Below, piece by piece: positions 2,054 through 63,200 of a DNA stretch of 64,000 nt. The first letter of the stretch is position 1. Each line of letters starts with the position of its first letter. A program made the position numbers and the translations under genes. The stretch is taken from contig JBLDXI010000020.1 of assembly GCA_047495785.1 (NCBI GenBank), positions 1,178,001 through 1,242,000 on the forward strand, written 5' to 3'. This DNA comes from Lepidodermella squamata (taxonomy: Eukaryota; Animalia; Gastrotricha). The notes under the pieces were generated by a model that saw nothing but the letters and a program-made list of their open reading frames with translations, searched no databases and had not been told where the DNA came from.

Positions 2054-4243
2054 ATGCCGGAGACTATTGAACAGTTGGATAGGTCAACACGCAGCGGCGT
2101 CTACAATTTGGCGTCTACAAAATTTGGCGGTGGCCCTGACAATCTGCCTCAATTTTTACTTAAAAATCTCGCTACTTCTCTCTCTGCACCTCTTTCTATC
2201 ATCTTCAACTCTTCTATGCTCTCAGGTCAGCTACCAGACGTTTGGAAGGTGGCAGATGCAGTCCTCCGATTTTTTTTCGTGACTCAACAGTGTCTGCCAC
2301 TGGAAAAAAATTGCGAAAAAGTGTACGCCAATTTGGAATTTTTTTATTTTGTCGTTTGTTTCGCTAAGCTGCTGTAGATTGGTTCGAAGTTCGCTAAATT
2401 CGCGAACCTAGTTAATACGCGATTGAAAAATCACAGATGCTATTTCCCAAAGCTTGAAGCCTGAAGTCTTCAATGCTGTTCTAGGGGAGTAAGGCGTAAG
2501 GTATTTTATACCGCCTTATTTTATAAAATCAGGGAAACAAAGGAATATGACTAGAATGCGAGCGAAGCGAGCCGATTTTTCGGCGATTCGCCTCTGAAAA
2601 TGCGAAAAATGAGCATCTCGAAGCTGGTTTTCTCTCTAAAAAGGATGGAATTTTAGGTCTCTTTCCAACTTCCTTCCGGACAGATTCCAGATCCCAGATA
2701 ATTGAAAATTGGTTCTAATGAGAATGGAAACTGGTGGCTTAGGAGAATGGAATAAAAGGAAAATGGATATCAGCGAGCGAAGCGAGCAAATTTTCGATAT
2801 GAAAACACACAAATTGTGTATTTTTAACTCGAGAAATCCCTAAACCTGACTAGCTTCATAAGGTCTTAAAAGTGTACGCCGATTAACTATACCCTTTTCT
2901 CAACGGTTTTAATAAGGACTATTTTTTTGTGTCTGCCACTGAGCGTGGTCCAGTGGGCAAAAATCGGAACACTGGGCAGATGTTATTTCTATCTACAAGA
3001 AAAGCGGATCTCGGCTGGAAGCTAAAAATTACCGGCCTATCAGTCTTGCCAGTAACATCTGCAAATTGCAAGAAAAAATTATAAAAAATATTCTTACTGA
3101 GTATCTGAAAAGAAATAATGTGATACCGCCTAACCAGTTCGGCTTCCTGGAAAAGCGAAATGTTGAACTATTGCTCTTAATCTGTCTCAATAAATTCACG
3201 TTCTACCGAGATAATAATATACCCGTGGACATAATTTACCTTGATTTGGCGAAAGCCTTCGACTCTGTTCCTATTTTCAAGCTAATAAGTGCTCTTAAGA
3301 GTTTCAACATATGCGGAAATCTACTCGCGTGGCTAAAGTCGTACCTCTTAGACCGCAATTTCCGAACTAAAATAGGTAACAGTATGTCAGGTTGGAGAAA
3401 TGTGAACTCAGGTGTGCCTCAGGGCTCAGTTCTTGGACCGCTTCTATTTATTATATTTCTTATAGCTATCGATATCGACACGAAAGTCGAGTCTCCCTTA
3501 TTTTTTTCGCTGATGACAACAAAGTGTTCAGACCGATTATGAAAAATGAAGACAAATGTGTTTTGCAAAAAGATCTCGACAACATCATTTCTTGTTTTAA
3601 TGAAAATGGTCTCGATATAAATTGTGAAAAATGTTGTGTAATGAGAATCGGAGCAAGCGATGAAATCTCGACAGACTATACTATAAATAACATACCTATT
3701 CGCGTTGTAAAGTCCACTAAAGACCTAGGCGTTGTTGTTGATAAGGATCTAAGCTTCACGCAACATTGTGCTACACTTATGAACCGGTGCTCAAGTCTAT
3801 GCTCTGCTATTTTAAAGAGTTTCAGATGCAATCGATTAAAGATAATGGCTTTTAAAACTTATGTTTTGCCGATTCTGGACTACTGTTCTACTGTGTATAG
3901 CCCCTATTTTCTCACAACGATTGACAACTTGGAAAAAATACAAGAAAGATTTCTTAAAGCTGTGTTTCCAACCTTGAGCTACGATGATGCGTGCAAACAC
4001 TCTGGTACACTACGATTAGAAAATCGTAGAATTTTACGTGACTTGTTGTTTTTTTCAAAGCTTACCACAATTTTGTTGATGTCTCTTTTTCATCTTTGTT
4101 CGACTACTAACACTAGAAAGGCGAAACACTGCATAGTTCCTTCTAAATGTCGCTCAGATCCCCGAAGATTTTGTATTGGCAACAGAATTAACAAAATATG
4201 GAATAAGGTACCAGAATGCATAATTAACTCGGTCGCTCATTAG
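2054..4243 (+). mobile_element. 5'-truncated CR1/L2-type LINE ORF2 (reverse transcriptase), interrupted and frameshifted
   Basis: GPDNLP...LSIIFNSSM..GQLPDVWKVA; NYRPISL; QFGF; YLDLAKAFDSV; SGVPQGSVLGPLLF; FADD; KDLGV; LDYCSTVYSP; WNKVP; frameshift near 3500 and hAT insertion at 2259-2974. Confidence 0.93.
2259..2974. mobile_element. Non-autonomous hAT-like DNA transposon inserted in the LINE
   Basis: Perfect 8-bp TSD GGCAGATG (2251-2258 and 2975-2982); TIRs CAGTCCTCCGATTTTT / AAAAATCGGAACACTG; removing it restores the RT frame WKVADVISIYKKSG. Confidence 0.9.
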
Positions 4244-24206: not shown

Positions 24207-25303
24207 ATGAAACTCACTCTGGTTTTGATTCTCGTCATTTCAAATCAAGGTTCAGTTAACAAATTAAATTCCGAGCAATATGTTAAATTTTAATGAAATT
24301 ATTCCAGGTTTTTCAATACCATCGTGCTCCAATCAGCGCGAAACCATGCAAATCAACGGGGTTTCTCACGGCTTTTTCTCCGCTGATATAAACCAGCAAA
24401 CAGGCGAGTATTGGCCGATGCAGCGGTGCACCTGGAACATCACTGTCCGGCCGCATTCACGGATAAGACTGCTCTTCAGCCTACTCGACCTAACGCCCTC
24501 CATCAACTATAAACCTCCTAATGGGTCGATGCTCGAAGGTGACGATTATCAACCGTGTGGCTGCGATCGAGTCACCATTTTCGATGGAGCGGCTTCCTCG
24601 TCTGGGAAGGTATCAATTTTGGAATCGATTTGCGGAGATTTCGGGAAGCCTACCGAGCCTATATTGACATCTTCAAATAAAGCGACCATTCAGTTTTGTT
24701 CTGACTTTCGTCTACATTCCGACCGGAAATACCGTGGCTTCACCCTACATTTTGATGAAGGTATTCGAAATTTCAAAAAATTGAATCTCGAAAAAATGAT
24801 GAATCGATTTTTTTTCAAGGTTTTCCCGCTCATGAAATTTCATCGCCAATTTCACAAACTAAAATTACGGCCGTAACTTCATCTGAAAATATTCCAGAAC
24901 AAACATCAACTAGAAAAAGAATTCCAAGTCGGAAGTTTCGAAAAAGAGTGGCGAAAACGACGCTCAAACGGCTTGATCTAAAGTTAACGACATTAACCAA
25001 GGGTGTCCAGTACTCGACTACTGAATTCGACCCGGAGATAATTCGTATAAAAGACAGTAGCGAGCTCTGCCTACCTGATTTAGATCCTTCGGCAATAGTC
25101 TTCGGGGCTGTGTAATTAAAAGAATTCAAATTATTATTTCAATTGATTTGTTTTTGTTTTCAAGAATCGGATTACTTGCGGTAGTAGCTGTTGCGTTTCT
25201 CATCGCAACTTGGGCTCGCGAGGAACGGTTTTGGTCTAACGCAAGCGAAAAATCAACTCAAGCGGCAAATACATCGTTTTTCTACGCAGACATAAACGCC
25301 TGA
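24207..25303 (+). CDS. Single-CUB-domain type I membrane protein; exons approx. 24207-24249, 24308-24760, 24820-25111, 25164-25303
   Basis: Signal peptide; CTWNITV...IRLLFS...CGCDRVTIFDG...ICG...SSNKATIQFCSD...GFTLHF; S/T- and K/R-rich stalk; TM AIVFGAVIGLLAVVAVAFLIA; short tail. Confidence 0.85.
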
Positions 25304-30011: not shown

Positions 30012-30272
30012 TTTCGACGCGTACTAGTTTCCTGCTTTCCAATTAATAGGAGGTATCTGAAACGTTGAAACCCAGTTTTATCAGTCAAGAGCCGTCTAAT
30101 TGCTGTGTTCACAAACAATCTCAGATTTATTTGCTTTGTGCTTCATATTATTACAAATAGCAATCACACCGTTAACACTACAGTGAGAAAGCCACTTATA
30201 ATGACGTCATGGCTTGGATTCAGCAAGTTACTTGGTTCGCCGCGAGTAGAAAGATGGCTGTAATAAAATAAA

Positions 30273-32599
30273 TTAATACAATTTTGATTTAATAACGAAT
30301 AACTTTACCGGTAGAGGCGCTGGAGCTGTTTCGACTTTGGCGACGAATTTTTCAACAACCATGAAAATCGATGGTTCTTTTTCGTTGTCCGGCTTGTCGC
30401 TGGTAGACTCGATCGATCTCTTCAGCCCGCTGACGTCGATTGACTGGTCAATCTCGCCAAAGTATATCAACGTGCGGCGATATTCATCGATCGCGACTTC
30501 GAACAATTTTTCCAGTTCGACTAGCTTACCACCCTCCAAATGGCAAAACGAGGCCATTGCGTCTTTGAACGCCTTTTCGCTCACCGCTGCCTTCTCCAGC
30601 TGTTCAGGTGACGTTGGGACAGGTAAAATGGCTGGTAGCGCCGGGTTTTGCTGGCTTTCCATCTCGATCTTGGCCATACCAGCGCGGAGAGATGCGATTT
30701 CCGCGTGCAGGGTGCCTAATTCCCCAACAACCGAAGCTGCTTTCAAATCGCTTATTTCCGCCGAAATTTTGATAGGATGCTCAGCGTGTGATAGCACTTG
30801 TTCAGTTATTTGCTCGCCTGATGATGACTTCGCCTCGCAATGAGGACAAACAGGAGGGTGTAGCAAGACCTTGCGGACATAATCGGTTAGGGTGAAAGTT
30901 GCCCGTTTCGAACTTTTTGTATCACCCAGTCGCAAGAGGCTCGTCAATTTGAAGCCATTAACAGCTTTAGGCCGGCTGAAACTATTGAGAAAATTGCCAA
31001 TAGCAAGGGTGATTTCGAGAGTTTTCCTGAAAGCAGGGCTGTCGCGAAGTTGCCGCGAGCAACTGATTAAAGCCTCGAGTTTCGGCTTCACGGCATCGAC
31101 GTTTTCGCTGAAAGATTTTCGGTACACAAGAGCGTTCAATTTCTGAACGCAGCGAGGTATCTGCGACAACTCCCATAAAAATCGATCAGCCGAAGCGAAA
31201 TTAGCCAAATTATCGCGAAATCGTGCTAAAATTCGAATTTCGTCCTCAGTTGGAAAGTTTCGAATGAGACTAAAAAAAAATTGAAAAATTTCGTTTCAAT
31301 TTCAGGTAAGATGTAAACTTACTTCGAGCATACGTCAGCTGAAAGAACGTTATTGACGTCCATTGTTGAGATTAAGTTGACCAGCTCACCAATAGGCAGT
31401 CTCACAGCCGAAGATAGCAGAATGTTGAGATTGTGCGCGCGGCGCGAGTCGATGACGGAAAAAACTTGGCTGTGTGCCAGCATTGAAGAGCCAGCCCCGC
31501 GTTCTTCTGACGGCCGTGGAGTTGACGACCTGCGCCCGGGGGCTTTCTGGCAGAATATCTCTTCAAGCTCCATGAGATCGATGCGTTTCAGCACGCATTG
31601 CCAACTGCCGCGCGTGTTCTCCCAAACTGTGCCGCGAATTTTGAAATCAGGTAGCGGGACCCAGTTGAAACATTTCACGGGTCGGGACGGTTTCGGGAAT
31701 CGGATAGTTCTCGAATCTAGCGTAGTAGGCAATGGCGGGGGTGGGGGAGGCAAACCTCCAGGCGACATCGGCGGCGGGTCTGGGATAAGAGGTAAAGCAG
31801 GTTCGCTGGGTGATGCCTCGTCACGCATGACTGGATAAGTCTGTTGCCGGTTCATTATCGGCGAGCATGGTTGAGATTGGCTAGCGATTGAATGCTCCTG
31901 TTGTTTCTGCTGTTTTTCAGCAAGTACGGCTGAAATCGCTGATGCGGCGCTGAGGACGTTCGGGCTGACATTAGCTCGAATTCGGCTGACTGAGGGAGGC
32001 GGAGGTCGTTTCGGCGTCGTCAAAAGTTCATGAAGAGCTGCTTTCAATTCGGCATTTTCTTCCGGCTTATGATAATCCCCGCGGCTATTACTTTCCTTTC
32101 GTTCGACTACATCTTTTTCAGGTGTCTGTTTTTCCGCGACTGGTTTTCTCGGAACAGGAGTAGGAATTGGAGCCGGCGGTTTCGGCGTATCTTCAACTGG
32201 TGCTGCTTCGGTATTGACTTCGATTTGTTGACCATTCCGCCAGTTATGAGATGGGATTATTCCGACAAAAAATAAATGCTGGTCAGGAGGCGCTTGCCTG
32301 GTGCAAATTTCAGCTAGCTGATCAGGGCCCCAAACCAGGCGAAACGACACGCGCGACTGAGCAAACTCGTCCAGTCCATCTCTTAGCTTTCTCTTACATT
32401 TCGTCCATAAGTGACGCAGCTGCACGGCGGAGATGAAAGCTGCCAGAGAGAGAAATAGGACTATCTGCGGAACCAAGATAATGGCCGGAACAAAATATTG
32501 CGACGCAAGGCCTCCTTGGTCGTTACTAATAGGCTCTGGTACCGTGACAGCCTCTTTTACTCCAGTTGCTGGCCGCGTGGAGCAATTTTCAACTTCCAT
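30273..32599 (-). CDS. Formin (FH1 plus DAAM-like FH2) with an N-terminal hydrophobic segment; exons 32599-31323 and 31269-30273
   Basis: Polyproline FH1 PPPPPPLP; FH2 motifs KCFNW...GTVW, RRAHNLNILLS, ADRFLWELSQIP, LAIGNFLN, GFKLTSLLRLGDTKS; no GBD/DID or DAD visible. Confidence 0.92.
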
Positions 32600-35050
32600 A
32601 AATAAAATAATTGATATGGCTTTGAGTTGGATTTCAGGTCATGGTAAAAAAATCTAAAACAAGCAAGTTAAGGTGGAATTTTTTGCAATTCATGGCATCA
32701 GATGAGAGTGATGAGTCACTTCCTGCGCACGAATTCAAGCGCGAGCATATTATATTATCACGGTTCATCGCGATCATCATAATCATTTAGGCGTTACCAA
32801 GTAGGATGTTAGTCACTAAAGCTCAACTGGTTTGTTTGTCATCATAAAATAATAGACGCCTATTCATTGGATTTTTCAACGAGATCCTTATCGACTCGGA
32901 GGCCCGAAAAAGCTCAAGTAGGCGAGATTAGACTGTAATTAATATAGCGTTGGCGGCCAGTGCCACACTTATATAAGGCCATCTATTGAGGAAAACACCA
33001 GCAGCGAGATAGCGTGAGTGTAAAATGGGATAATGAAAGTTTGTTAATTTTTTGACAGCCAAGTGCGCATCAGCGGGAAATGCGAGAAAAGACGCGACCG
33101 AGTGCCATAAAGATCCTGTTCTCAAAATATAGTAATAAATCATGACTGAAATGTTGGCTAATTAGATGGCAAAATAATCCGATTAATTTTTCTACCAGCA
33201 TTAATTAATTATTCACGTAAATATTTGCTCGTCGACTTATCGAAGTTCACGGCCGGCTTAAATTTCGCCGGCACGTGGCGCGTGTAGATCCAAGAAGTAC
33301 GCGCGCAATATCTTGTAAAATTTTATCTAAACAGAAAAAAAAACGCAAAAAAACCCTGAAAAAATGCGCAACCGGACATGAGGTACAAAGTAGCCTGATC
33401 AATCGCGCAAAATTCGTTATGAATGCTTCTGTCAGTATTGTTGCCTTAGATAGATGTTCTGTATAAGAAACGCGGCCGGTATATTTTGGCGAGCGATGAA
33501 AAAGGCATCAGCATTGGGATAAAAATAACCTCGGGCTGGCGTTGTTGTTATAGTTGTAGAAAAGCGTAATGTAAACAAGTATATAGAAAAATAATATCAC
33601 AAAAAACGATCGAATCCGCCCGCGAGCACCGTGGTTGTAGCCGGGTGGAAAACTACCGGTGCAGACTTTTGATAAATTGAGAATGAGAAAATTCTGTTTT
33701 TTAATTAACGATTGAGTCAAAGGAAATAATAAGTTCAAGGAGAATTTTTCAACCTTATGCGGATTTTAATTATTAAAAAGTTTATTTTATGAAAATTTTG
33801 CCAACCTGGTCTAACACTTGGAATGGTCCCCTGTTTTTTCCATCCTGTCATCATGGGTGATAACTAAGGGATGGTCCAATGGTAGTATATACTACGCAAA
33901 AAACACGGCCCGGTGCGTAGCCGTTCTTCAATGCCATTATGTTTATTTCAACAGTAGGTCGATTATACCACCCATCATACGCTTTATATCTTGCAACTCA
34001 ACGCTACAGCAGGTAGTCTGAAAGGTACCAATTTATTACACAAACAGCTAACGAGCGATGCAAACACGCCGGTGTTTTTTTCTGCGCGATATATACACTC
34101 GAAGGGACGTTACTCAACGCGCAAATAAAACGCACATAATGGCTCTGGGTGACTAAATAGGGCTTACATTTTTTTGCAGTAAAAAATTGTTATAATATAT
34201 GATGTAAGAGATATAGATTACATTATACCTACACCGAAAAGGTAAAACTGGAGTTTAAGGTTGAAAAACCACGCTGCGTTTATTTACGCCCTTGAGGCAA
34301 CAAATGTGAAAACAAACCAGCGACTTCCGCCCGGCGTGGCACCGCTTTTTAATATTATTATTATTATTATTGCTCATCTTAACTTGGCACTGTTAATATT
34401 AGTATTTTATTTCGCTCCATTGTTTTGGCGCACAATTTACAATCGCCACCCTTCAGACTGCCCGGCGTTATACTACTACTACCTATAAAGCGATGAGTCA
34501 GCACAACCGCTTAACATAAGCGATATTTGCTTGAGAAGGCGCTGGGATGTGCGATGGAAACAAATAATAATAATAACATTTATCTAAATTGTTATCATCA
34601 TCACAAAAACCAAGGTATTACCATAATATTACAAGCTATGTTTGGCCCAGCGGCTTTTTCCTGGCATCTGAATAGCCTTGCTATACTGAAACACAAGTGA
34701 AGAGAGCTCCACAAGCTACAACCGTTTTAGTACTCCGCAGCATCCGGAGATTAACAGTATACAGCGTACGTATACCGAAAGACAAGATAAGTTATGGCCA
34801 AGTTTGTTGTTGTTATTTTGGCATCTGTCCATCTGGAGTGATAAGGAAGCCGTAAAACTACGCGGGAAGCGCGGATGAAATGAAAAATATTCAGAATTAC
34901 TACTTCAAGCATAATACCCAAAACGCTAAGTTTATTTTCAATCAACTTCTCAGCTATGAAAAATAGCGAAAAAAACAAATATTCAATTAATTTGCATTTG
35001 CGTTGGGGATACAAAAAATTCAACAGTAAATATTATTCGCCATGTTTGAT

Positions 35051-35555
35051 TTAATTGGTTGCTGCTTCCGTTTCAGCAACTACAGCATCGGTATCGGCTT
35101 TCGTGCTAACAATTTTGAAATTACAATTGTCCGTCTCGCAGCACTATTGAATAATACGAAAACTATTTTTCTAGAAAAATCTCAGTCGATAAGCTAACCT
35201 TGAAGTTCATCAACTTGAAATTCGTAAACGTCGGTTGAATGCAAAGCGGGGAACACGATCGGAAGTAAAATCTGAAAAATCAGAACCGATTTGAATGAAA
35301 ATTCTAGATTTTTCCTGCATACTCTTTGAGATTGATAATCTGAAGATTTATGTTCGCCGAAGCTTCCAGACAATATTTAGCCAGGGGTGAACAAGTTCGA
35401 TTGGTACCCTTGTCCGTTCCTATATGTCAAAATATTACTACAATCGAAAATTCAGAAATTTTCTGCCACAAACCAGTACATCCAACACATTCGTTGCAGT
35501 ATTTTGGCGCGGCTGAAGCCAATGCGATCAACATGGAAAAAATAAGAAGCTTCAT
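35051..35555 (-). CDS. Secreted Ly6/three-finger protein 5 (10 Cys, no GPI signal); exons 35555-35474, 35419-35323, 35271-35199 and 35143-35051
   Basis: Hand translation MKLLIFSMLIALASA-APKYCNECVGCTG TDKGTNRTCSPLAKYCLEASANINLQIINLKE FYFRSCSPLCIQPTFTNFKLMNFK CCETDNCNFKIVSTKADTDAVVAETEAATN*; splice phases agree; missed by the ORF track. Confidence 0.88.
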
Positions 35556-35888
35556 TTTGAAAAGGTGAAATTCAGGTTATAAAAATTCAGAGTGATAGCA
35601 AACGCAAAATGGCAATGCGATGGCATAATTTTGCGGCTATAAATTGGCCTAGAATAAATTATCGCTTATTGTGGCGAACCTTGCCAAATCGGCTAATTTT
35701 CCGACTGGGTACCAGAAAGCATGTCGTGACATGACAAAAAGGCTGGAAAATTAGCTAGCTGGGCTGATTTATTGCGTCATCAAGTGCGTACAGGTTAAAT
35801 TATCATTGTCTGAACATAAATACGATGCATTTTAGGATAACGCCCACCTTAAAAAGAAATGTCATTTGTTCAAGTTCCTGGTGAGTTT

Positions 35889-37216
35889 CTAACGCGGATC
35901 CGTCGAGCAGTAGGTGGCGCCCATCGGGCGTTTGAAGTCGAGTTGAGAGTAATCGCCCTTCGTCCAGAATTTGCGATCTCGCTGCCAAAATCGGCTAGAT
36001 TTGTTGTCGTCATCCGCCGTGAAAACTACCAATTCATCGTGCTTCAAATTCTTGTCGATAAGAACCTGCGAGGGTGAATAATCGGTGGGGGCATTATCGT
36101 CCGAAAAAGTAACCGATTTCTTCGCATAGGTTTGACTGTCCGTGTACATTCTGAACGCGAGAACTGACGCCATGAAAACAGCGGCGAAAATCGTGAAGCA
36201 GCAAACTAGGGTGATGAGAAAATTAGGGCTGAAGGTAGCGGCCGAGTGCGATAGATGCACAGTTGCGCCAATAACCGCGGCGGCTTCTTCAATTTTCTTG
36301 CAACTTGCCGGGCAGTCCTGACAGGCACAGCTGCGATTAGTAACAGGTTCAATCTCGTTACAGGCAAGAGGTGAAAATTCGAATCTTGTCTCCTCGGATT
36401 CAGGAAGAGCCGCCAGACCGAGGCGAAGGGCTGGGATTCGATTTGCGACGAAGTTCATCAAACCAGCGACGGTCATCGGGGCTGGGAAGCCTTTGTCGTA
36501 AACAGCGCTAACGTGGTAGGCCGTGTTTTGGCACGACTCGGCTATCGACTCGAGGGTCGATTTATCAATTGCTACTCGCTTAACTGAACCGACGTAGCTA
36601 TGAGCGGAGCACGTGTCGTGAGGCCGTGTTTTAGCTAGAGGGTGTCGATTTTTCATGATAGCCGCAAGCTCAGGGTCGATTGGCAGTTCGAACTCGACTG
36701 AGTCAGACGGCTGGTCGATTTTCAGGCCTGACATGAAAGTGTCTTGGTCCGGCGAGCAGGTGATGCCGCATAGGAGATGCGCCAGGTTCGACACGCAAGA
36801 CGGGCAGTGGCCGGCAATCACCTCCAAACGCGCAAAGTGGCGGTTCAAATTTTTAATCTGATGCGCCGAGCAGCATGTAAGAAGGGGTGCTTCGGTATCT
36901 ATCAAGAAATTTAAGCATATCGAAATACGAAATCGAAAACAATAAGCCGACCATTTTTCGCGAAAAGCCTCGAGCATTTCTTCAGCAGGAAATTGGCGGC
37001 CTTTTCGTCGTCTAATGGCCTGGCTCTACCTTCGTAGGGACATGGCATGGCGATATCGGTCGCCGGGTCGGTGTAGCATTCATTGTACCAAACACAATCA
37101 GCATTCAACAAGCTGAAAAGCGAGCTTGAGGCCTGCAAAAAAATATAAAAAAATCGGCGATTACAAAACAGAAAACTCACGATGATGGTGATGAATAAGA
37201 GATTTCGCTGGATCAT
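35889..37216 (-). CDS. NPC1 N-terminal-domain-only single-pass membrane protein; exons 37216-37181, 37132-36952 and 36898-35889
   Basis: Signal peptide; ADCVWYNEC...CPYEG...TCCSAHQI...HCPSCVSNL..LLCGITCSPDQ...CNE...CACQDCPASC; one TM; about 100-aa tail; stop at 35889. Confidence 0.85.
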
Positions 37217-40819: not shown

Positions 40820-43800
40820 TCACGCCTCAGACGGCAGGTCGCAGCAGTCACGGGCGCTCATTGACACGAGCCGGATCGACTCGGCCGTGTTGCTGCGGTG
40901 ATGCCCGCCATTCACCGGCGCGTAGCGAATGTTGGACGACGAACCGCCTGGGGGCAGGCCGCACGCCACGCCATGCGCCACGCCAGTCATGTGCCCGGCC
41001 GCGCAGCCGCCGCCCTTCTGGCCGAACATCAGCTGCTTATCGCTGGAGTGCAGCGATTCGGCGGCGAGAATCCGCGTCAGTCTATCGTTTTGCTGGTACC
41101 TCAGTCGCGCCTTGTTACCGGGCGGGCCTGAAAAAAATTATTATTTTTATCATTATTTGCGCAACATAAACACGCATTCATACGTATAAAAATATGACAG
41201 GTTTTATAGGTAAACAGTCTACACGCCGAGAAAAAAAAAACAAGCTTATCGCCTCGTATATCTGTAGCGCTATTGGTCATATAATTGAGTTCATATGTGT
41301 GGGTATGTGTGGCATAGGAATGTTTATCTAACGTGGGTTTTGGCTGCGGGTAATAATCATTTCAATATGTTATTAACGCCTAATCAACCCGGGTTTTAAT
41401 GCGTGCCAGAGGAAACGGGGGCTGCTACAAGTGAAATATTATAAGAATGGCGCCTGAAGCGAAAAATGGCGCGCGCATCAAGCCGGCCGCGGAACAGATG
41501 TTTCACGCGGCCGCCTTAATAACTGACACGCCGATTAGGGTGAACGATAATTAAGGAAGCGGAGGATAGAAATGCTGCTGCTGCTGCTTACCGATAAAGC
41601 TGAGGAATGCCGGCAAGAAAACGAGACCATGAGCTGCGCCCAGAATGACGATCGCCAAGAACATTCTGAAATAATATACCTGTAGCGAAAAAAGTAAACA
41701 CATCAACGTATAAATTGAGGTGGATTTTTCGCAATTATTACTTGAAAGAGCCGAGATTTAGCAAAGGCAAGAATAACGATTCCGCCCAATTTCGTGAGAG
41801 TAATGCCGGAGAAGACCGATGAGCCAATGTGCGTCACGGTGTCCGTCATGCGACTCAGCCGCGTCGGCTGTGTGCTAATGGCGAATTTGCGAACCACGTG
41901 CGAGCAGAACTCGACGGCAATGCCGATAGACATGACGAGGTTGACGAGCGAGATGGCGTTGAGATCAATGTCCCACAAGAACATGATGCCAAACATGTCG
42001 ATGACAATCATCGTAATGACGACAAGCGTGATGAACGCCGAGTAGAAGTCGAAGCCGAGCAGCACGAATGAGACGAAGAAAATCGCCGCGCCGCACAGGC
42101 CCAAATTCGTCATAGTCATCTGAGCCATATCGACGTATTGCTCGTAGAACACGTAGAAGCTCGAATAGGCGAACACCGAGTAGCCAGTGCCTGATAACGA
42201 TTCAGTGAATTCATCGGCTATTTTACGCGACTCGCGAACAGCTCCGATAAAGTCATCAGAGGTCTTCAGCACAGAATGCCAGGCCATGAAATAAGTCGCG
42301 CCTATGTCAGGATTTTCGCCCATTTTCATCAACTCAACCGCGCCTGAATACGCCGCGTGACCGCCCTTCGAGCACTTTTCGTTCGGATTGTCGTGTAAAA
42401 AGTAGTCGATGAAGTGCTTGAAGTCTTGTCGCGATGGGCGCATCGTGCTTTGATTGTAGTTGGTCGCGCATGGCCGGTATGACTTGGTAGGATCGCGGCT
42501 GTATGACGGGCAGAAATTGCCAGAGTCTTTCTCGTAACCGCAGCACGCAACCTCGGGATTCAGCCACTCGATGTAATCGTCGACCCAAGACATGGCCGGG
42601 CGAGCGATGAAACTGTAGTTTGACAACTTCGATGCCAGTGAAATTCGTTCCATCAGCGAGTTTTCATCGCAGCCAGGCAGTGAACATATTTTGTTGATCA
42701 TTTTCGGGTCTGAATAGTCGTAACCTGAGCGGACAACAAAGTAAACCGGAGGGCCGACGGCGAGGTACTTTTCAAGGTCTTCGAAGTATCGCAACAGGTA
42801 GGAATCAGTTGGCATCGCCAGTTTCTGGTCAAGTCCAATGCGCACGTGTGGAATAGCGGCCATCGAAAGGAACAAAGTTCCGACGAAGAAAACCACCTGA
42901 AAATAAAAAATCCACCTTAAACTTATTTTGTTTCATTTTTTGGATCACATTAGTTTTTCGTCACATTTCCGTATTATACGTAGAGTGCACGCAAACCTGC
43001 CAACCTGCCACACCTGGTGCATCAATATATCATCGCCGTATAATAAAAACCAGAAAAAGCGTAGAGCGGAAACCTGCAGCCGTTGAGTAACAGCAGCAAT
43101 GAATCACGGGATTTTTTATGCTCCAGAACCGCCCAGTTTTCTCCTACTCCACACACTTTCTCAAGACGCAAGCGGCGCTGAATTACCAGCGCTGTGGGAA
43201 TACAGAATAATAACGCTGCTATCTCTGTTTTTTATGCCACGGCTTTGTGAAGCCGCCATTTTTTGCGCATCTTCCAATTACTAATGTGAAGTCTTATATA
43301 TGCGCATCCTATACACGCATTATCACAACGCGAAACGGCCTCATTTCGTTCTACAAAACGCCAAATAGGAGCCATCAGTCATTCGGGAACAAAGCGAGGC
43401 CAGAAAAAACATATAACGCCGATCGAATATCGACTGCTCTCTGCATAGTCATAAAACTACAAAGCGCGCCACGCCCTGATGCGCCCACCAAACGAGCCAA
43501 GTTCGTCGGCTCGATAACAGATTGAACCCGTCTGTTTTTGTTTTCACAAGGTAAACAGGATTGTTTTTTCGTCCCAGTAAGCGATGCCAAAGATTTGAAA
43601 CGTGACGCGAATTTTTGAGCCATTTAGCAAGAGGCACGCGAGTGCACTCGCCGGTGTGGTTGGCAGGTATCTATTATCTTGAATATGACGTCTTTCAAAC
43701 AATTAACCGAGTCGCGGGCATTGACAACTACACGCTTCGCTAGCAGAATTTAATACATCCGAGCACTCGCTACCCTCGCTCTCGCTACTCTATAAAGAGC

Positions 43801-46800
43801 GAGTAAACATCGTCAATGCAAGCTAAAGCGCAGACTGGTTTTTTTGTGTATTAAGCTGGATGTTTACCGCGTTAAGCGGCGACCGATACTACGATTAATG
43901 CTACTATGGTGAAACAAAAAACGCTGCGTCAAAAAACGCGCATGTACTCTCGGCTCATCACGCCACCGGTGCGCGCTACAAAGGATAGGTCGATCGCTGC
44001 CAAGGCGACGCGACAACACACGCCACGAAAAAAACGTGAGGCAGCGGCGGGCGTTGTCTGTCTCATGCTACGAGATCATTGAGCGCGGGCCGTGCACTCA
44101 CGTCATTATTAGTGCTTAGCCTTATTTACGCGACGAACCGCAAAAAAAGTAGTAGGCTGTTAGGTAGGTTGGTAAGGAAATAAATTGAACTAAATCTACG
44201 GCTGCTACTTGGCAACAAAGACACGTTAACCTGCCGCCACGCGTGAGTTAATTCGAACAAGTGGCGCGGAGCAACACGTGCTCCATTAAACAAATTAGCT
44301 AGTCAAGTAATGAATGGATAAAAAACTCACGACTATGATGCGAACGCATGGGAACGACAGAATCGGCGCGTAGAATTTACGGAACAGGCGGAATAACATG
44401 CCACCTTTATGCTCGCCAGGTACAGATCCAGGCGCCGTGCGACAACAGCAGAAAATGTCGGGCCTCGAGCTCTGAAATATGATACGAAACATAGCAAAAA
44501 ATCGTTAATTTCGCACTTATTAAAAATCCGCCTTAAAATGTACCTTCATGCGGCGTGCGTCGAAAGTGAGCATAGCGATGAAGGCGGTCATTTGCAGGAA
44601 GAAGTTGAGAAAAACGGCCGTGCCTGCGTACAGCGAGAAAATGTGAACGGCGGGCATGTTTGACAGGGCGCCGAGCAGAAAAGCGATCGATTCTGAGAAG
44701 CTGGTCAGCATCATCGAAGGTCCGAGACGTCCGACAACGAATCCAATGCGCTCTTCAATGGTCACATCAGCCACGTACGGCAGGCGTTGGTAAGCCTGGA
44801 CTAGAATGAAGATATTGTCGACACCAACGGCCAGAACCAGGAAAGGCACTACTTCCAGAATGATCAGCGTAGGCGGGATTCCGGTATAGGCGTACAGACC
44901 CAAGGCGGCGGTGACCGAAAGCAACACAACCATAACTCCGGCAAGACCTAGGGTAGCCTTGGCGTTGATAACGATGTGAAGCAGCTGGCTGGGCTGGTAT
45001 TGGCCAAGAGCGACCGTCACGTAGACGAACATGATCAAGTACGAGAGGAGAATCGTAATTTTATCAGTATCGCTCTGCCTATCGATTTCGTCTTGAATCG
45101 ACCGCTCAGCGCGGAAGGTTACGCGGAAGGTCGAGTTCGGATGGCTGGAAACTTCGTCGGAGATGTTGGTCATCATTTCAATGAACGCCTTCTCCCAGGC
45201 AAGCGCCGGGCCATTCTCATCGTGATCGACGTAGTTTTTAACCGGGAAGGTCAGAATGATAGCTGATGAATTGAAATACTGCTCGCCAGGATAGCCACCG
45301 AATGCGAGATACGGCGCGACGATTCCGCCAAATTCTGCCATGCATTCGTGCAGCTCACCATCAGCGCCGTTCGAGCCGACATTCGACGGATTTTTCACGC
45401 ATTCATGCAAATGGTCGAGGTAACGATCGTCTTCAGTCCATTCTTCAATAGTCTTGGCGTTGTTTTGGAAGTATTGAAACACGCTCAAAAACAGCGAGCC
45501 GTTGTTGCTCGGGTACATTGGTTTCAGCGAGATATCGTCAAAGCGGACACGTTCGCCATTGAACTCAACTTCTAGGTTGATGATTTGCTGCTGCATTTCG
45601 AAGATTTTCTTGAAAATTTCGCGCTCAAACAAATAACTGCCCAGCATATCTCCATTCACGATGGTACCTAGGTCGTGGAATTGCGGATTAGGTGGCTGTG
45701 GCTTCACCTCGGTGATTATAATTTGAGAGGTGCGGTAGAATGGGCCGAAGTGCTGATCGAAGTAGTCTTTTTCAACACGAGCGCGGCTATCTGGAGCGGA
45801 CCAAAGCTCAACAGGATCGACTAGAGGCTTGCGATTTAGGGCAAGGCCACCGGTGAGCGCAGCGCAGATTGAAACGCTGAAGATCATGACCAGAACAGGG
45901 TGACGGGCGCAGAACATGCCCCAATCGCGAAAGCGCATTTCTAGCATATTTTCAAACTTGGCGCCGAATCTTTCCGTGCACGTAGTTTTGACCGACTCGT
46001 TCGTGGCGTAAATAGCCGCAACCGCCTTGGATTTCTCAATTTCGCACAGTGAATTCGTGCTTCCGGCGACGATGATCTCATCCTGAGTGATAAATCGACG
46101 GCTTCGAAGCCTGCGAGCGCAGACAATGCGGTAAACAACGGCGAAAATCAGAATGCTGCCGGTGAATATCGCGAAGCCAATCATTGCAGCAAACAAATAA
46201 CAGTCGATATTATAGAACTTGCACTGGTGTTGTAAGGCCGATGCGGGTGGCGGTGGAAGAGGGGCGCAACAGGCTGGACAATCTGCGCAACTGCATCGCA
46301 TCCGAGATCGCGGCTCGGTTTCGTTGCAAGCATACACTTTATACTTGATAGCGTTATCGTCGCCTTCAACAGGCTCGAATTTCATCTCCATTGGTACGTA
46401 TGAGTTGGTGCTAGGTTCGCCAATGAACTTGAGAAGTTTCTCGATTGTGGGATCACTGCCAACAATGATTTCCAAAGCCCTTGTTCCGGCCATTTGAACG
46501 CTGATACACGATTGAAGAACTCCTTCGATCGTAGCTCGGTCGACAAGAATCGAGCCAACTTTTTCGACGTAAGGCCCGGGAGCATCAACTTGGCGCTTGC
46601 GGCGACTGAGAGTAGGCAACGTCGAGGTAGCTTCTACAGGTTCCGCAGACGGAGTTTTATCGTCATGAGCTTCAGTAGAAAGCTTGGTTAACTCAGCAGC
46701 TACAGTAGAGGTTGCAGATTCACCATTTATATGCTCAGATTTTTCGGCAGACGAGTCCGTTTGAGTTGAAGAGGACAATTCAGTCTCAGGAGATGTTGAC

Positions 46801-47356
46801 GCACTTTGTTCATGGATTTCGGCGTGAGTTGTTGAATCGGCTGGTGAAGTTTCTGATACCGCATCTTCTAGCGCATCTTCAGAAACTTCTTCGACAGGAT
46901 GTTGCACGGACAACTCTGACATAAATGAAGATTGATCTTTGCTGCAGGTGAAGGCGCAGAACAAATGAAGCATATTCGAAAAGCAAGAGGGACAGCGGCC
47001 CACGACAGCGCGTAGTTTTTCGATGTTGCTACGAAGCGTGTGGATTTGAGCAGCAGAGCAGCATGTTCGAAGTGTGCCATCCTGTTCTCGGGAAAATAAC
47101 AACGGGCAATTGTTCAGCAGGAAATCCGCCGCACTAGTATCGTTCAATATTTTTGGGGCGCCATTATACGGACAGGCTTGAAATAGCTCAATAGAGCCTT
47201 TCTCTGACCGATGGCAATTCCCATACCAAACACAATCAGCTTGCACAGAAGAAAACAACTGGAATAAAAGAAATTAATAAAATCAAATACTTATCCAGTC
47301 CAGATTCTCACCTGATAACAAGACAAAAAGCCAAGAATTAGAATACAATGTTTCAT
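40820..47356 (-). CDS. NPC1: Niemann-Pick C1 cholesterol transporter; exons 47356-47312, 47258-44544, 44471-44331, 42896-41742, 41679-41592 and 41127-40820
   Basis: [10 protein letters not shown]; [27 protein letters not shown]; [19 protein letters not shown]...GPSM; [14 protein letters not shown]; GPPVYFV; [21 protein letters not shown]; [12 protein letters not shown]; YYFRM. Confidence 0.97.
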
Positions 47357-57248: not shown

Positions 57249-58067
57249 TTAATATTGATCGAAATCGTTTGAGAGGCTCAGAGGCTTTGCATAGGGTGAA
57301 TTCAAGGAAATCGCTGGCGAAGGCACTGGACGACGGACAATGGGAACGTTATCTGAGTTGGCCGAAACAGCTACTTCCAAGCGTTCCAGTCTGCGCAAAA
57401 TATCGCCATTTTCGACGAGCTGTTGAGCTTTTTCTGCTGTTTTCAAAATTGAATCAAATCGGGACGCAACCAATTCCAATATAGCAGAGGCATTTTCCAA
57501 GCGGCAACACGCCTTGGCAATACGGTCGTCAACTTCCGTAATGGCCTTGGTTTGATCAGGCGACAAATGCGGCTGGCCCAGATTTTCATCGGTATCGCTT
57601 TGCGAGTTCAATTTGGGTGATTGAGCGGAAGAGGACTTAACTAAAGTCTTTCGCGGCAACACTGCGTTAGGGGTGGGATGAGCATGTGCCGGTCCGAAAT
57701 GCTTTTGCACATATTTCAGGATGCTAAGGCAAAACATCACCTTGTGCTCTGGTGCGAAACCCCGTTGCAAGAATTGAGCTGGAGTGAGAGGGATTACTTT
57801 GAACTGGAAGAGCGTGCGTGCAAGTTTGAAAACATTTTCAACGAATTTTTGGTCACTAGCCACGCTCAACATGATTCCATTGTCAATCACGCGTTTCGCT
57901 AATTCCAATGAGTAATCCAGCAGTGCAAAATGAAGGATGGGAAGCAGAGGTTCGCAATAACCGCGCATTACATCTTCATAAGCAACGGTTTTTGTGTACT
58001 TCATTCGGCGCAATTCGGACTGTAGAGAAGAAACACTGTTCTTCAAATCACCGGCTTTTGGAAGCAT
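57249..58067 (-). CDS. CEP44: Centrosomal protein CEP44-like (single exon)
   Basis: GDLKNSV..LQSELRRMKY...LLPILHFALLDYS...SDQKFVENVFKLAR..F...LTPAQFLQRGFA.EHK, followed by a coiled coil. Confidence 0.85.
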   Translation of the reverse strand: MLPKAGDLKNSVSSLQSELRRMKYTKTVAYEDVMRGYCEPLLPILHFALLDYSLELAKRVIDNGIMLSVASDQKFVENVFKLARTLFQFKVIPLTPAQFLQRGFAPEHKVMFCLSILKYVQKHFGPAHAHPTPNAVLPRKTLVKSSSAQSPKLNSQSDTDENLGQPHLSPDQTKAITEVDDRIAKACCRLENASAILELVASRFDSILKTAEKAQQLVENGDILRRLERLEVAVSANSDNVPIVRRPVPSPAISLNSPYAKPLSLSNDFDQY

Positions 58068-60216: not shown

Positions 60217-63200
60217 ATGGCATCATCTGATATCGCGCTACTTGAGACAACGTTCAGTAGCGAGTTTGTTGATGGCTCGGGAAGAGTTATTCAGCCGTAT
60301 GAATTTTCGGTAATTTATCGGCTTTCAGCGAATGAATTAATTTATTGAAATTTCAATAGTTTACGGCTGAGTCTTCGAACATTCCCTCTAATGCAGCTGT
60401 CGCGAAAATCATGTTTGAAATCACCCGATTGCTCACGACTGTTCGTGGCGAGGGTAACGTAGTGACTTCGTCTCGCAACGTTTTGCGATTCCGGATCGAA
60501 AACTCAGATAGGCCACCGATGACCGTCAAAGTAGGCTGCGCCATAAGTTTTAGCAAACTGATTTCAATTTTGTTTACAGTTCACAGCAAAGGCTCTGGGC
60601 TGCCCGTCAAACGATGCTTGGTTCGAGTTGGTCGGTGGAGTAATGGACACAGTATCGCGTCACGTGACTGACGCGAAGCCAACAGTCGCCCCAATTTCTA
60701 CTCAGCGTCAGGCTTCTCAGGAAAAATCAAACAACATCAAATCTCCAATCCGTAAATCAATGAAATCTCCGCCACTTGCGTCGCCTCCCCCACCGCAACG
60801 TCAAAGCTCATTAGGATCAAGCAGTGTTGTGAAATCGCCAGTTCCTTGCAAATTGCCAAATCTAAATGATTTGAAGCAGTTTTTGAAGGCAAACCCTCAG
60901 TGCATTGTCTATGTGCCGTATGAAAATGGCACCGAATTAATGCCATCAGTAATTAGCACATATCCAGTTAACGGCGACGATAATTTGGTAAAGAAACCTA
61001 TCTAATTACATTGCAAGTTTGTAATTTTGATTACATGCTTAGATAACGTGTAAACTCGGCCTATGGCGAGGTGCTGCTGAGGTGACTTGCCGAGTCAGTG
61101 AAGTGTTTTTGATGAAGGAAATTCCTCAATACGCGAAAATGAACGCCTATTCCAACCCACCTGGTAAACATTTATCGCTGAAATTCAATCAAGTTTTCAT
61201 CCTTATTTTGCTAGCTTCGATTGGAAACTTGGCAAGCTGCGAAGACTCGCGCGTTTCAGAATTCATTGGGATTGTGGAAATCACCCTTCCAGGCAAAGCT
61301 TGTGAACGGTTGAAAGTGCGATATGTCGAGCAAAACCGGGAAGATGAAATTCCGTTATTTCGTTGCACCCTTTTCCGTGAGGGCGGCGTCCTTGAATTGA
61401 TAAAGCGGCGTTTGGTTCAGGATAAGGCGAAAACTAGTGAGATTCGCGAGGCGCCGAAACAGGAGGTCAGCGACGAGTTCGGCCGGCGTAGTCGCAGCAC
61501 GTCTCGCGCGTCGAAACGCGGAATTAGCGACGCGATTGAGGTGGCTGAAGATGCGGACGCTGTTTTGCCGGAACGGCGCAAAAGTTCGCGGTTAGACGCG
61601 CCGCAGCAATCTCGTCGCCGATCCGCCGCTCCGCAACCTATGGATTTCGAATCGAGTGAGGAGGTTGAAATCGCAGGCGATGCGGCGGCGGAAGACTTCC
61701 CGGCGAAAGAGAACGACGGCGCGTCGAGTGGAGCTGGGAATAAGAAGAGGCGGGCAACTATCGCGAATATCACTGCCCCGGCGACTTTCCCGCGTTCAGC
61801 CGAAAAGACGAAACCTGGCAAGGCGGCTCAAGCCCAGGCTGGCCAGGGCCGTCGCGGTTTGCGCCAGCAGCCGGATGAAGACCAGCAAGAAGCGGGCAAT
61901 CACGACCCGTTATCGAATTTGTTCAATGGAAACGTTTTCATGGTTCTAAACGCGGGTGAGCGGAGTTCTTCGCCTGCCGATGACGAAACGCGGTCCGTGG
62001 ATATGATCGAGCGGTTGATTAAGCAGGCGGGCGGGCAGGTGGTTGAATTGCCGGTTTGCAGCCCGCCGGAAGTTCTCGCGAAAATTACGGTGATTTGCAA
62101 GCAGGAGATGACGTCATTCAAGTACTTGTTCGCGATTGCGGCTGGAATTCCATGCGTCTCCTACGAATGGGTCAATGCTTGCCTCGATTCGTGCAGTTTG
62201 GTCGACAAAACTAACTTCCTCCTCCCCGCTGCTAGGTATTCGAATAATTCAAAAAGTTTATTGAAAAATAATTTTCGTTTTAAATTTAGGGAAAAAGATG
62301 GCAAACTCTATTCGCAGCGAAGCCCCTATACGGTGAGATTTTTTTTTTACGATTTTATGGCTCGTTGAATTTTCATGAGATATTTCTTCCATTTCCTTTT
62401 ATTATTGATTTTTTTTACGAAATGCTATTTCACACATATTTTTTTCCATATAATCGTGTTTTTAACCAAATGATTAGGAATTGGGGTTAGGTTAGGTTTT
62501 GGGGTCGGTTAGGATTCAGGGCTATGGTTAGGGTTAGGATTAGTTGAGTTTCGGGTTATTTACAAAGTTCGGTTTTTGGGCCTTTGCACTTCCCACTTCC
62601 CCAATAACCATTTTCATGCGATAAAATTGACCACGTTTTCGGAACCCCATTTTTCTCTTATACAGGGTGTTCGCGTAATAATACTCTTCTAAAAATAGCT
62701 TTGCTACTTTTTGCATGCATTTTAGCTTTTTTGTAGCTATTTTTAGCTCGCTCAGAGTATTATCACGCGAACGCCCTGTATAAACCAAAAACTAGTCATC
62801 TGGCATTTTTCTAATGTTTCCAGCTCGAAGTATATGAAAAATAATGTGTATGTAGGAAAGATTGCATCCATTTTATTTTTTATTTTAAACTTTTATCATT
62901 TAATTTTCTCAATTTTTTTCAGAAAATATTCAGTGGGACCAAAATCTTTGTGGCTGCCCGGTGCAGAGAATTTTACGTGACGTGGCAGGCGTTGATTGAG
63001 GCGGCTGGGGCGTCAGTTTTGCCGGCGGTTGACGGGGCTGGGTCACCGTTTCGACGTCATTATCTGCACGATGGTGAAAACCAGACGGATGCGATTGATC
63101 AAGAAGCTGTTGATAAGGAGGCTGAGGCCCTTATTCCGACTTGCGATTACGTCATTGTGGGTAAGTATCAATTTCGAAATAAATTTTTTCTCGTTAATTT

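Follow-up and report, generated by a model that had tools for sequence, protein, structure and literature searches.

The 64,000-nucleotide (nt) stretch of the gastrotrich Lepidodermella squamata analysed here (contig JBLDXI010000020.1, positions 1,178,001 to 1,242,000; hereafter the window) carries on its minus strand a formin gene whose predicted product places a single hydrophobic segment ahead of the formin homology domains FH1 and FH2. Two long open reading frames (ORFs), 32599..31319 (426 aa) and 31208..30273 (311 aa), belong to one gene of three exons, with a coding sequence (CDS) at 32599..30228 that after splicing is 2268 nt long, stop codon included, and encodes 755 aa (Table 1). The gene is real and transcribed. 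The RNA evidence consists of the assembled contigs of one public RNA run (X1), in which both introns are seen exactly, the CT..AC borders on the plus strand corresponding to GT..AG on the minus strand. The joint 31269/31323 skips 53 nt, with 180 nt on its shorter side, and the joint 30257/30309 skips 51 nt. The sequence itself has a GTAAGT donor after 31323, the acceptor TTTTTTTAG before 31269 and a further short intron near the 3' end. An earlier note on this DNA, made from the letters alone, had described one open frame: RNA depth shows that 32599-31323 is indeed one continuous exon, whereas the whole CDS is divided among three. The lower limit given there, 30273, falls on a stop codon within intron 2, and the true stop lies at 30230..30228.

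Table 1. Features of the formin gene, with positions in the window
Feature	Coordinates	Strand	Basis
5' untranslated region (UTR), to the limit of the RNA contig; in-frame stop 32641..32639, 2-codon upstream ORF (uORF) 32642..32634	32600..32655	-	RNA contig, translation
Exon 1: aa 1-425 and two bases of codon 426; N-terminus, predicted transmembrane (TM) segment, linker, FH1, first third of FH2	31323..32599	-	ORF, continuous RNA depth, joint 31269/31323
Predicted extracytoplasmic N-terminus, aa 1-34; polar, acidic, no K/R in last 15 residues, sequon NCS at aa 5-7	32498..32599	-	
Predicted signal-anchor TM helix, aa 35-59; 25 uncharged residues, internal Pro-Gln kept in orthologue	32423..32497	-	hydropathy, orthologue, low-confidence AlphaFold
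Basic juxtamembrane stretch, aa 60-74; 6 K/R and 1 acidic residue	32378..32422	-	
Minimal FH1, aa 271-291; PPP and PPPPPP tracks (aa 275-289), ends 7 residues before FH2	31727..31789	-	PPPPPPLP kept in orthologue
FH2, aa 296-746, split by intron 1; lasso Trp313/Trp326, Ile393, GNFLN, Lys544, insert with PPxCxHC	30309..31714	-	Pfam, alignment, PDB matches
Intron 1, 53 nt, GT..AG, phase 2	31270..31322	-	RNA joint; position and phase identical in orthologue contig L001
Exon 2, remainder of FH2	30309..31269	-	ORF, RNA
Intron 2, 51 nt, GT..AG, phase 0	30258..30308	-	RNA joint 30257/30309; position identical in L001
Exon 3, coding part: 9-aa tail PSFYSRRTK and stop TAA (30230..30228)	30228..30257	-	sequence, spliced translation

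The 5' end of the gene

The start of the gene is covered by an X1 contig, 32196-32655, that runs unbroken and with no unaligned overhang across a 56-nt leader, the ATG (32599) and the hydrophobic segment; a stop codon, placed 14 codons above this ATG, closes the main frame. In X1, RNA depth is zero across 32758 to 34924, and no joint in its contigs omits a stretch of exon 1 or connects it to an upstream exon. Two arrangements had been named in the earlier note as fatal to its proposal, and neither was found: the X1 contigs contain no transcript that splices out the hydrophobic segment or adds GBD/FH3 exons, and instead of belonging to a separate gene, this segment is joined by an X1 contig to the ATG and the 5'UTR. 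A related DNA run under a different organism label (X2) offers a second view of the same region. All indels listed in its contig over 32196-33270 lie at or above 32600 (19/23 gap letters, the first adjoining the ATG), a distribution that coding constraint beginning at this codon would produce.

These data bear on the possibility that the gene model is incomplete or its N-terminus unused, in that upstream GBD/FH3 exons exist, the hydrophobic segment is skipped, or translation starts at Met aa 249 or later, any of which would yield a cytosolic FH1-FH2 protein. That the RNA comes from a single run, as contigs, speaks for such a scenario, as does the weak Kozak context of the first ATG, which is preceded by the 2-codon uORF. 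Nevertheless, we consider it very unlikely, given the unbroken contig through the hydrophobic segment and the ATG with its in-frame stop above, and the RNA-free interval upstream, at which the 3' end of the next gene lies. Two further points against it, the lack of DAAM-like N-terminal homology and the conservation of the N-terminal frame, are taken up below.

Three minor observations concern the transcript and its variants. The uORF, ATG ACC TGA (32634-32642), lies in the transcribed leader and overlaps the in-frame stop of the main frame. The interval 31934-32129 (196 nt) is represented by two X1 contigs, one identical to the window and the other with 10 differences (about 5%), and two diverged formin alleles or copies appear to be expressed. 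X2 diverges from the window by about 2-5% throughout.

The hydrophobic segment and an orthologue

The first 34 residues have no hydrophobic core, and the sole hydrophobic segment, of 25 residues, begins only at aa 35; no signal peptide is apparent. The Kyte-Doolittle 19-mer maximum of the segment is 2.42, and values of at least 2.3 are reached by only three others of 144 formin relatives, namely the orthologue described below, a gene-model chimera that looks joined to part of an ABC transporter, and a 109-aa fragment. The segment exceeds chance. In the 15 residues on either side of it, K/R number 0 before and 6 after, with RHLWTKCKRKLR at aa 62-73 within the basic juxtamembrane stretch. According to the positive-inside rule, a basic flank stays cytosolic, so this asymmetry points to a reverse signal-anchor, oriented N-out/C-in and without a signal peptide. 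The features by which type III membrane proteins are recognised, at least 19 uncharged hydrophobic residues and a more positive C-terminal flank, are found here and also in the orthologue, where K/R number 0 and 1-3 on the two sides. The predicted ectodomain of 34 aa has 3 Pro and no Pro-rich stretch, and the basic stretch is followed by a linker of ~200 residues, a few elements of which are kept in the orthologue. The sequon at aa 5-7, the run of about 25 hydrophobic residues and the basic stretch behind it are thus all as the earlier note described them; its N-out/C-in orientation fits the charge asymmetry, while membrane insertion itself we infer.

A search for other proteins joining a TM segment to FH2, which the same note had recommended, yielded one orthologue with the same architecture on metagenome contigs. 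In an exhaustive HMMER comparison of exon 1 with 1.8 billion representative proteins, there was one strong match, P0001 (2.5e-60), and all remaining matches, with E-values of 1e-15 or weaker, covered the FH1/FH2 part only. P0001 is the exon-1 ORF of a eukaryotic metagenome contig from ENA (L001), of which near-identical contigs, L002 and L003, occur in other samples. The orthologue is 842 aa long and has three exons, with introns at identical positions and phases. Its hydrophobic 25-mer (aa 52-76) is uncharged, contains the same internal Pro-Gln and aligns with the aa 35-59 segment; a sequon, NQT (aa 31-33), lies N-terminal to it, and its terminal micro-exon reads PSFYSRRSK where that of the window reads PSFYSRRTK. 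Identity between the two proteins is 55-75%, roughly 70%, in FH2, 32% in the TM segment, and 15-29% in the N-terminus and linker. Because exons, hydrophobic segment and micro-exon recur in the orthologue, the architecture is conserved and no accident of assembly or annotation.

The comparison also bears on whether the N-terminus is used. Across more than 290 poorly conserved codons the reading frame has stayed open and the segment hydrophobic in both species, and the three population variants (L001-L003) are nearly identical, differing only by in-frame indels in low-complexity runs. Upstream of the orthologue, the other strand carries a BTB-Kelch gene as its neighbour, and the 2.5 kb between the two contain no formin-like ORF; a DEG/ENaC gene is also adjacent to the orthologue. 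Both the retained frame and this arrangement argue against an incomplete model or a cytosolic product started downstream.

Beyond this orthologue, no further species emerged when exon 1 and exon 2 were each compared with word-indexed proteins, JGI metagenome contigs scanned with alignments of both exons contained no relative, and the 144 formin matches included no other credible TM formin. Two candidates among them were rejected. In P0110 (713 aa), a DAAM-type FH1-FH2 is preceded by N-terminal pieces that resemble an ABC transporter and include TM segments. This protein most likely results from a fusion of gene models and illustrates how false "TM formins" originate; in P0084, the hydrophobic segment sits in an armadillo-type N-terminus.

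The FH2 domain, its descent and the missing control domains

The polyproline at aa 273-291, directly before FH2, and the FH2 domain itself, both of which the earlier note had read from the sequence, are borne out. The two ORFs score 2.9e-13 / 50.2 bits and 3.3e-38 / 132.2 bits against Pfam FH2 (PF02181; gathering cut-off 34.8), matching profile positions 5-115 and 142-354, that is, 5-354 of 372 overall. The Ile and Lys of actin nucleation are likewise kept, as Ile393 (31423..31421) in NLNILL (aa 390-395) and Lys544 (30917..30915) in GDTKS (aa 541-545), which we take to be the equivalents of Bni1 I1431 and K1601. Together with Trp313, Trp326 and GNFLN, they align with the FH2 domains of DAAM, delphilin and FHDC1. 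Relative to the same alignment, FH2 contains three lineage-specific inserts.

Comparison with other formins points to DAAM. Of the solved structures, the FH2 of DAAM1 matches best (1.8e-24), ahead of FMNL3, mDia1, INF2 and Bni1, and the best non-orthologous database matches, labelled by their database names, are DAAMs of Lingula, Ciona and nematodes. When 40 FH2 domains are placed in a maximum-likelihood tree with FHDC1 as root, both predicted TM formins share a clade (93/93, ultrafast bootstrap/SH-aLRT) with the DAAM or DAAM-like proteins of metazoans, nematodes and choanoflagellates, on a stem of 1.9 changes per site, with delphilin, ichthyosporean and early fungal sequences outside that clade. 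The tree was built without DIAPH, FMNL, FHOD, FMN, INF2, MWHF and PHCF, which were not among the best matches. Descent of this FH2 from DAAM, as proposed in the earlier note, is therefore unproven, other metazoan subtypes not being in the tree, but it is the best-supported reading of these comparisons; its support is moderate and the stem long.

The same comparisons speak to the idea that a plant class I formin was gained by horizontal transfer. Language-model features of exon 1 do rank plant formin clusters first, with a score (0.87) that lies under the tool's own reliability line and is a lead only. Those of residues 1-135 fall nearest to plant formin N-termini and to LIME1, TMIE, opalin and stannin, all of them small single-pass proteins whose ectodomains are short, again with scores under that line and as a lead only. 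However, the nearest FH2 domains are those of animal DAAMs by database match and PDB structure, and of holozoan DAAMs by tree; neither a signal peptide nor a proline-rich ectodomain is predicted, and the short spliceosomal introns match the host genome. On these grounds we reject a plant origin, and a transferred plant gene seems to us extremely improbable.

The domains by which many formins are controlled by Rho are missing. There is no Pfam match to Drf_GBD/FH3; tblastn with the GBD-DID-DD N-termini of four DAAM-type formins found no match in the 64 kb window or in L001-L003, and tblastn with two DAAM C-termini (DAD) found none in the window or the orthologous loci. FH2 is followed by only a 9-aa tail, whereas DAAMs run on to the DAD motif DDLxSAL. 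Judged from these searches, a GBD-DID-DD N-terminus and a C-terminal DAD are absent from the protein, in agreement with the earlier note, and with them the autoinhibition relieved by Rho or Dishevelled would be absent too. The lack of DAAM-like N-terminal homology, both here and at the orthologous loci, is a further argument against undetected upstream exons.

Whether such an FH2 still assembles actin deserves separate consideration, as it could be a membrane-tethered domain reused for dimerisation or binding, like that of nematode FOZI-1. The stem of ~1.9 changes per site, the three inserts, one of which contains Cys/His, the minimal FH1, and the failure of phmmer to align the second half to DAAM or to most PDB formins would agree with lost activity. 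Yet Ile393 and Lys544, at which mutation abolishes formin activity, are kept in both species along with the lasso Trp and GNFLN, FH2 is the most conserved region between them and matches nearly the full Pfam profile, and a polyproline track directly precedes it in both. Loss of actin assembly thus seems unlikely to us.

Two features of this part of the protein stand out from the rest. The lineage-specific insert that follows the GDTKS helix, ~30 residues in length, contains PPxCxHC (aa 564-570, 30838-30858), which is kept in both species and is a possible metal or redox site. The C-terminal tail, PSFYSRR[T/S]K, occupies its own micro-exon (30231-30257; L001 8629-8655) and, with 8/9 residues shared, exceeds most of the protein in conservation; a role in sorting or regulation is possible.

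Predicted membrane anchorage, related formins and the rest of the window

Collectively, these results suggest that the 755-aa formin is an integral, single-pass membrane protein with an FH2 of the DAAM lineage and without GBD-DID-DD/DAD, which builds actin at the membrane, a reading to which we assign a probability of about three in four. The protein would be inserted co-translationally as a type III protein, with aa 35-59 acting as the reverse signal-anchor, the acidic 34-aa N-terminus crossing the membrane and the basic stretch keeping the remainder cytosolic. On the cytosolic side, the flexible linker of ~200 residues would carry one profilin-binding polyproline track and a dimeric FH2, and the FH1-FH2 dimer would nucleate unbranched actin filaments at the surface of the membrane and drive their elongation. 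Its placement would depend on membrane insertion and trafficking, not on recruitment by Rho, and its activity would be free of DID-DAD autoinhibition.

As to the membrane concerned, long TM helices favour the late secretory pathway and the plasma membrane, and from its length of 25 residues the predicted helix weakly favours the plasma membrane or a post-Golgi membrane. A possible, though clearly less probable, alternative is an anchor on an internal organelle (endoplasmic reticulum (ER), Golgi or mitochondrial outer membrane), with actin built there as by prenylated INF2 at the ER. It is well established that an N-terminal TM segment with a strongly basic flank, here 6 K/R in 15, is also typical of signal-anchored organelle proteins, and no sizeable ectodomain hints at a role at the surface. 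On the other hand, a 25-residue helix with a Kyte-Doolittle value of 2.42 is generally held to suit the signal recognition particle (SRP)/ER route and late secretory membranes better than the outer membrane of mitochondria, and the orthologue has only a weakly basic flank.

Several points weigh against a membrane-anchored, actin-building formin. The TM helix is predicted from hydropathy and conservation, and its internal Pro and Gln would make insertion costlier. The positive flank of the orthologue is weaker, with 1 K/R in 15 and 3 in 30 residues after the TM segment, and AlphaFold, given an alignment of two sequences, modelled exon 1 poorly (pLDDT 37), drawing a helix at 32-56. The gene is known from two species only. 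Contigs of one RNA run show presence, not absence, and rare isoforms with other 5' exons are possible. Finally, FH1 offers only one good profilin track, and the divergence of FH2, of which phmmer aligns only the first half to DAAM, means that nucleation activity is not assured.

Among known systems, the protein is nearest to DAAM (human DAAM1 FH2, PDB 2z6e/2j1d), with which it shares the closest FH2, including Ile, Lys, lasso and GNFLN. It differs from DAAM in having neither GBD-DID-DD nor DAD, with a predicted N-terminal TM helix in their place, and in its three FH2 inserts, very long branch and single polyproline track. With plant class I formins (AtFH1, AtFH5), it has in common one predicted TM segment, a cytosolic FH1-FH2, and the lack of GBD/FH3 and DAD. 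Those plant proteins, however, are type I proteins that have their signal peptide cleaved off and bind the cell wall through a proline-rich ectodomain (PMC11194305, PMC2386819), whereas the present protein has a DAAM-type FH2, a 34-aa predicted ectodomain without a Pro-rich stretch and no predicted signal peptide. The "plant class-I-like" architecture of the earlier note therefore holds for the order of TM segment, FH1 and FH2, but not for the signal peptide, the ectodomain or FH2. Since FH2 is of the animal DAAM type and its nearest relatives are holozoan DAAMs, the likeness to plants is best read as convergent, as had been proposed, and is only partial.

Animal formins held at membranes are well known, and INF2-CAAX (prenylated, at the ER), FMNL (N-myristoylated) and delphilin (palmitoylated) make actin at membrane surfaces (PMC11194305). 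These lipid-anchored proteins are peripheral and reversibly bound, whereas the present one is predicted to be integral and to depend on transport along the secretory pathway. Rare "tm" formins outside plants were predicted by Grunt et al. (2008) in Helobdella, Naegleria and C. elegans (CeDaam, NP_503132.2) (PMC2386819). CeDaam is likewise a DAAM with a predicted hydrophobic segment, but it retains GBD/FH3; the present gene lacks GBD/FH3, its 5' end is supported by a transcript, and a second species carries it. A 2024 review from the same group withdrew the earlier cases, finding no evidence for non-plant integral membrane formins, and described all non-plant formins as cytosolic or nuclear and integral-membrane formins as unique to plants (PMC11194305 Box 1). 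The surveys of Pruyne recognise nine metazoan formin subtypes, none with a TM segment (PMC5047451, PMC5628938). None of the papers listed by our full-text literature search describes an integral-membrane formin from outside plants, and those among them on non-plant subjects use "membrane-anchored formin" in other senses.

On balance, we lean towards regarding this protein as the first bona fide integral-membrane formin of a metazoan, a DAAM-lineage paralogue that would have lost control by Rho and DAD, gained a type III signal-anchor and converged independently on plant class I. Filaments would then start from a formin lodged permanently in a membrane, probably that of the surface or a post-Golgi one. 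Conserved and supported by transcripts, this TM-FH1-FH2 gene of an animal runs counter to the view that integral-membrane formins are confined to plants and, if its reading is true, would overturn transmembrane formins as a plant synapomorphy. It would also indicate that a DAAM-type FH2 can be redeployed without GBD/DID/DAD control. Such a protein could serve as a test case for filament twist when a formin is unable to rotate freely in the membrane, for the regulation of a formin without autoinhibition, and for the sufficiency of direct membrane tethering in patterning the cortical actin of animal cells. The scope is modest, comprising two species and a predicted function.

The rest of the window holds several other genes. 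Upstream of the formin, at 34925-37216 on the minus strand, lies a gene that encodes a hydrophobic stretch behind a stand-alone N-terminal sterol-binding domain of NPC1 (Pfam NPC1_N, 1.9e-19). Its 3' part is probably represented by the RNA contigs at 34925-35515, in which two introns of the minus strand occupy 35144-35198 and 35272-35322. A complete NPC1 gene (41703-47258) forms a tandem with it. By NPC1 sequence, the closest named homologues reach only 36-39% identity and belong to amphibians, molluscs and crustaceans. ORFs at 3066-4243 with a weak reverse-transcriptase match (RVT_1, under the gathering score) represent a retroelement remnant. Besides NPC1, the window encodes a CUB domain at 24280-24876, a CEP44 homologue at 57249-58067 (1.2e-29) and a BRCT-domain protein at 61082-62368; with the DEG/ENaC and BTB-Kelch genes beside the orthologue, this gene content supports an animal origin of the window.

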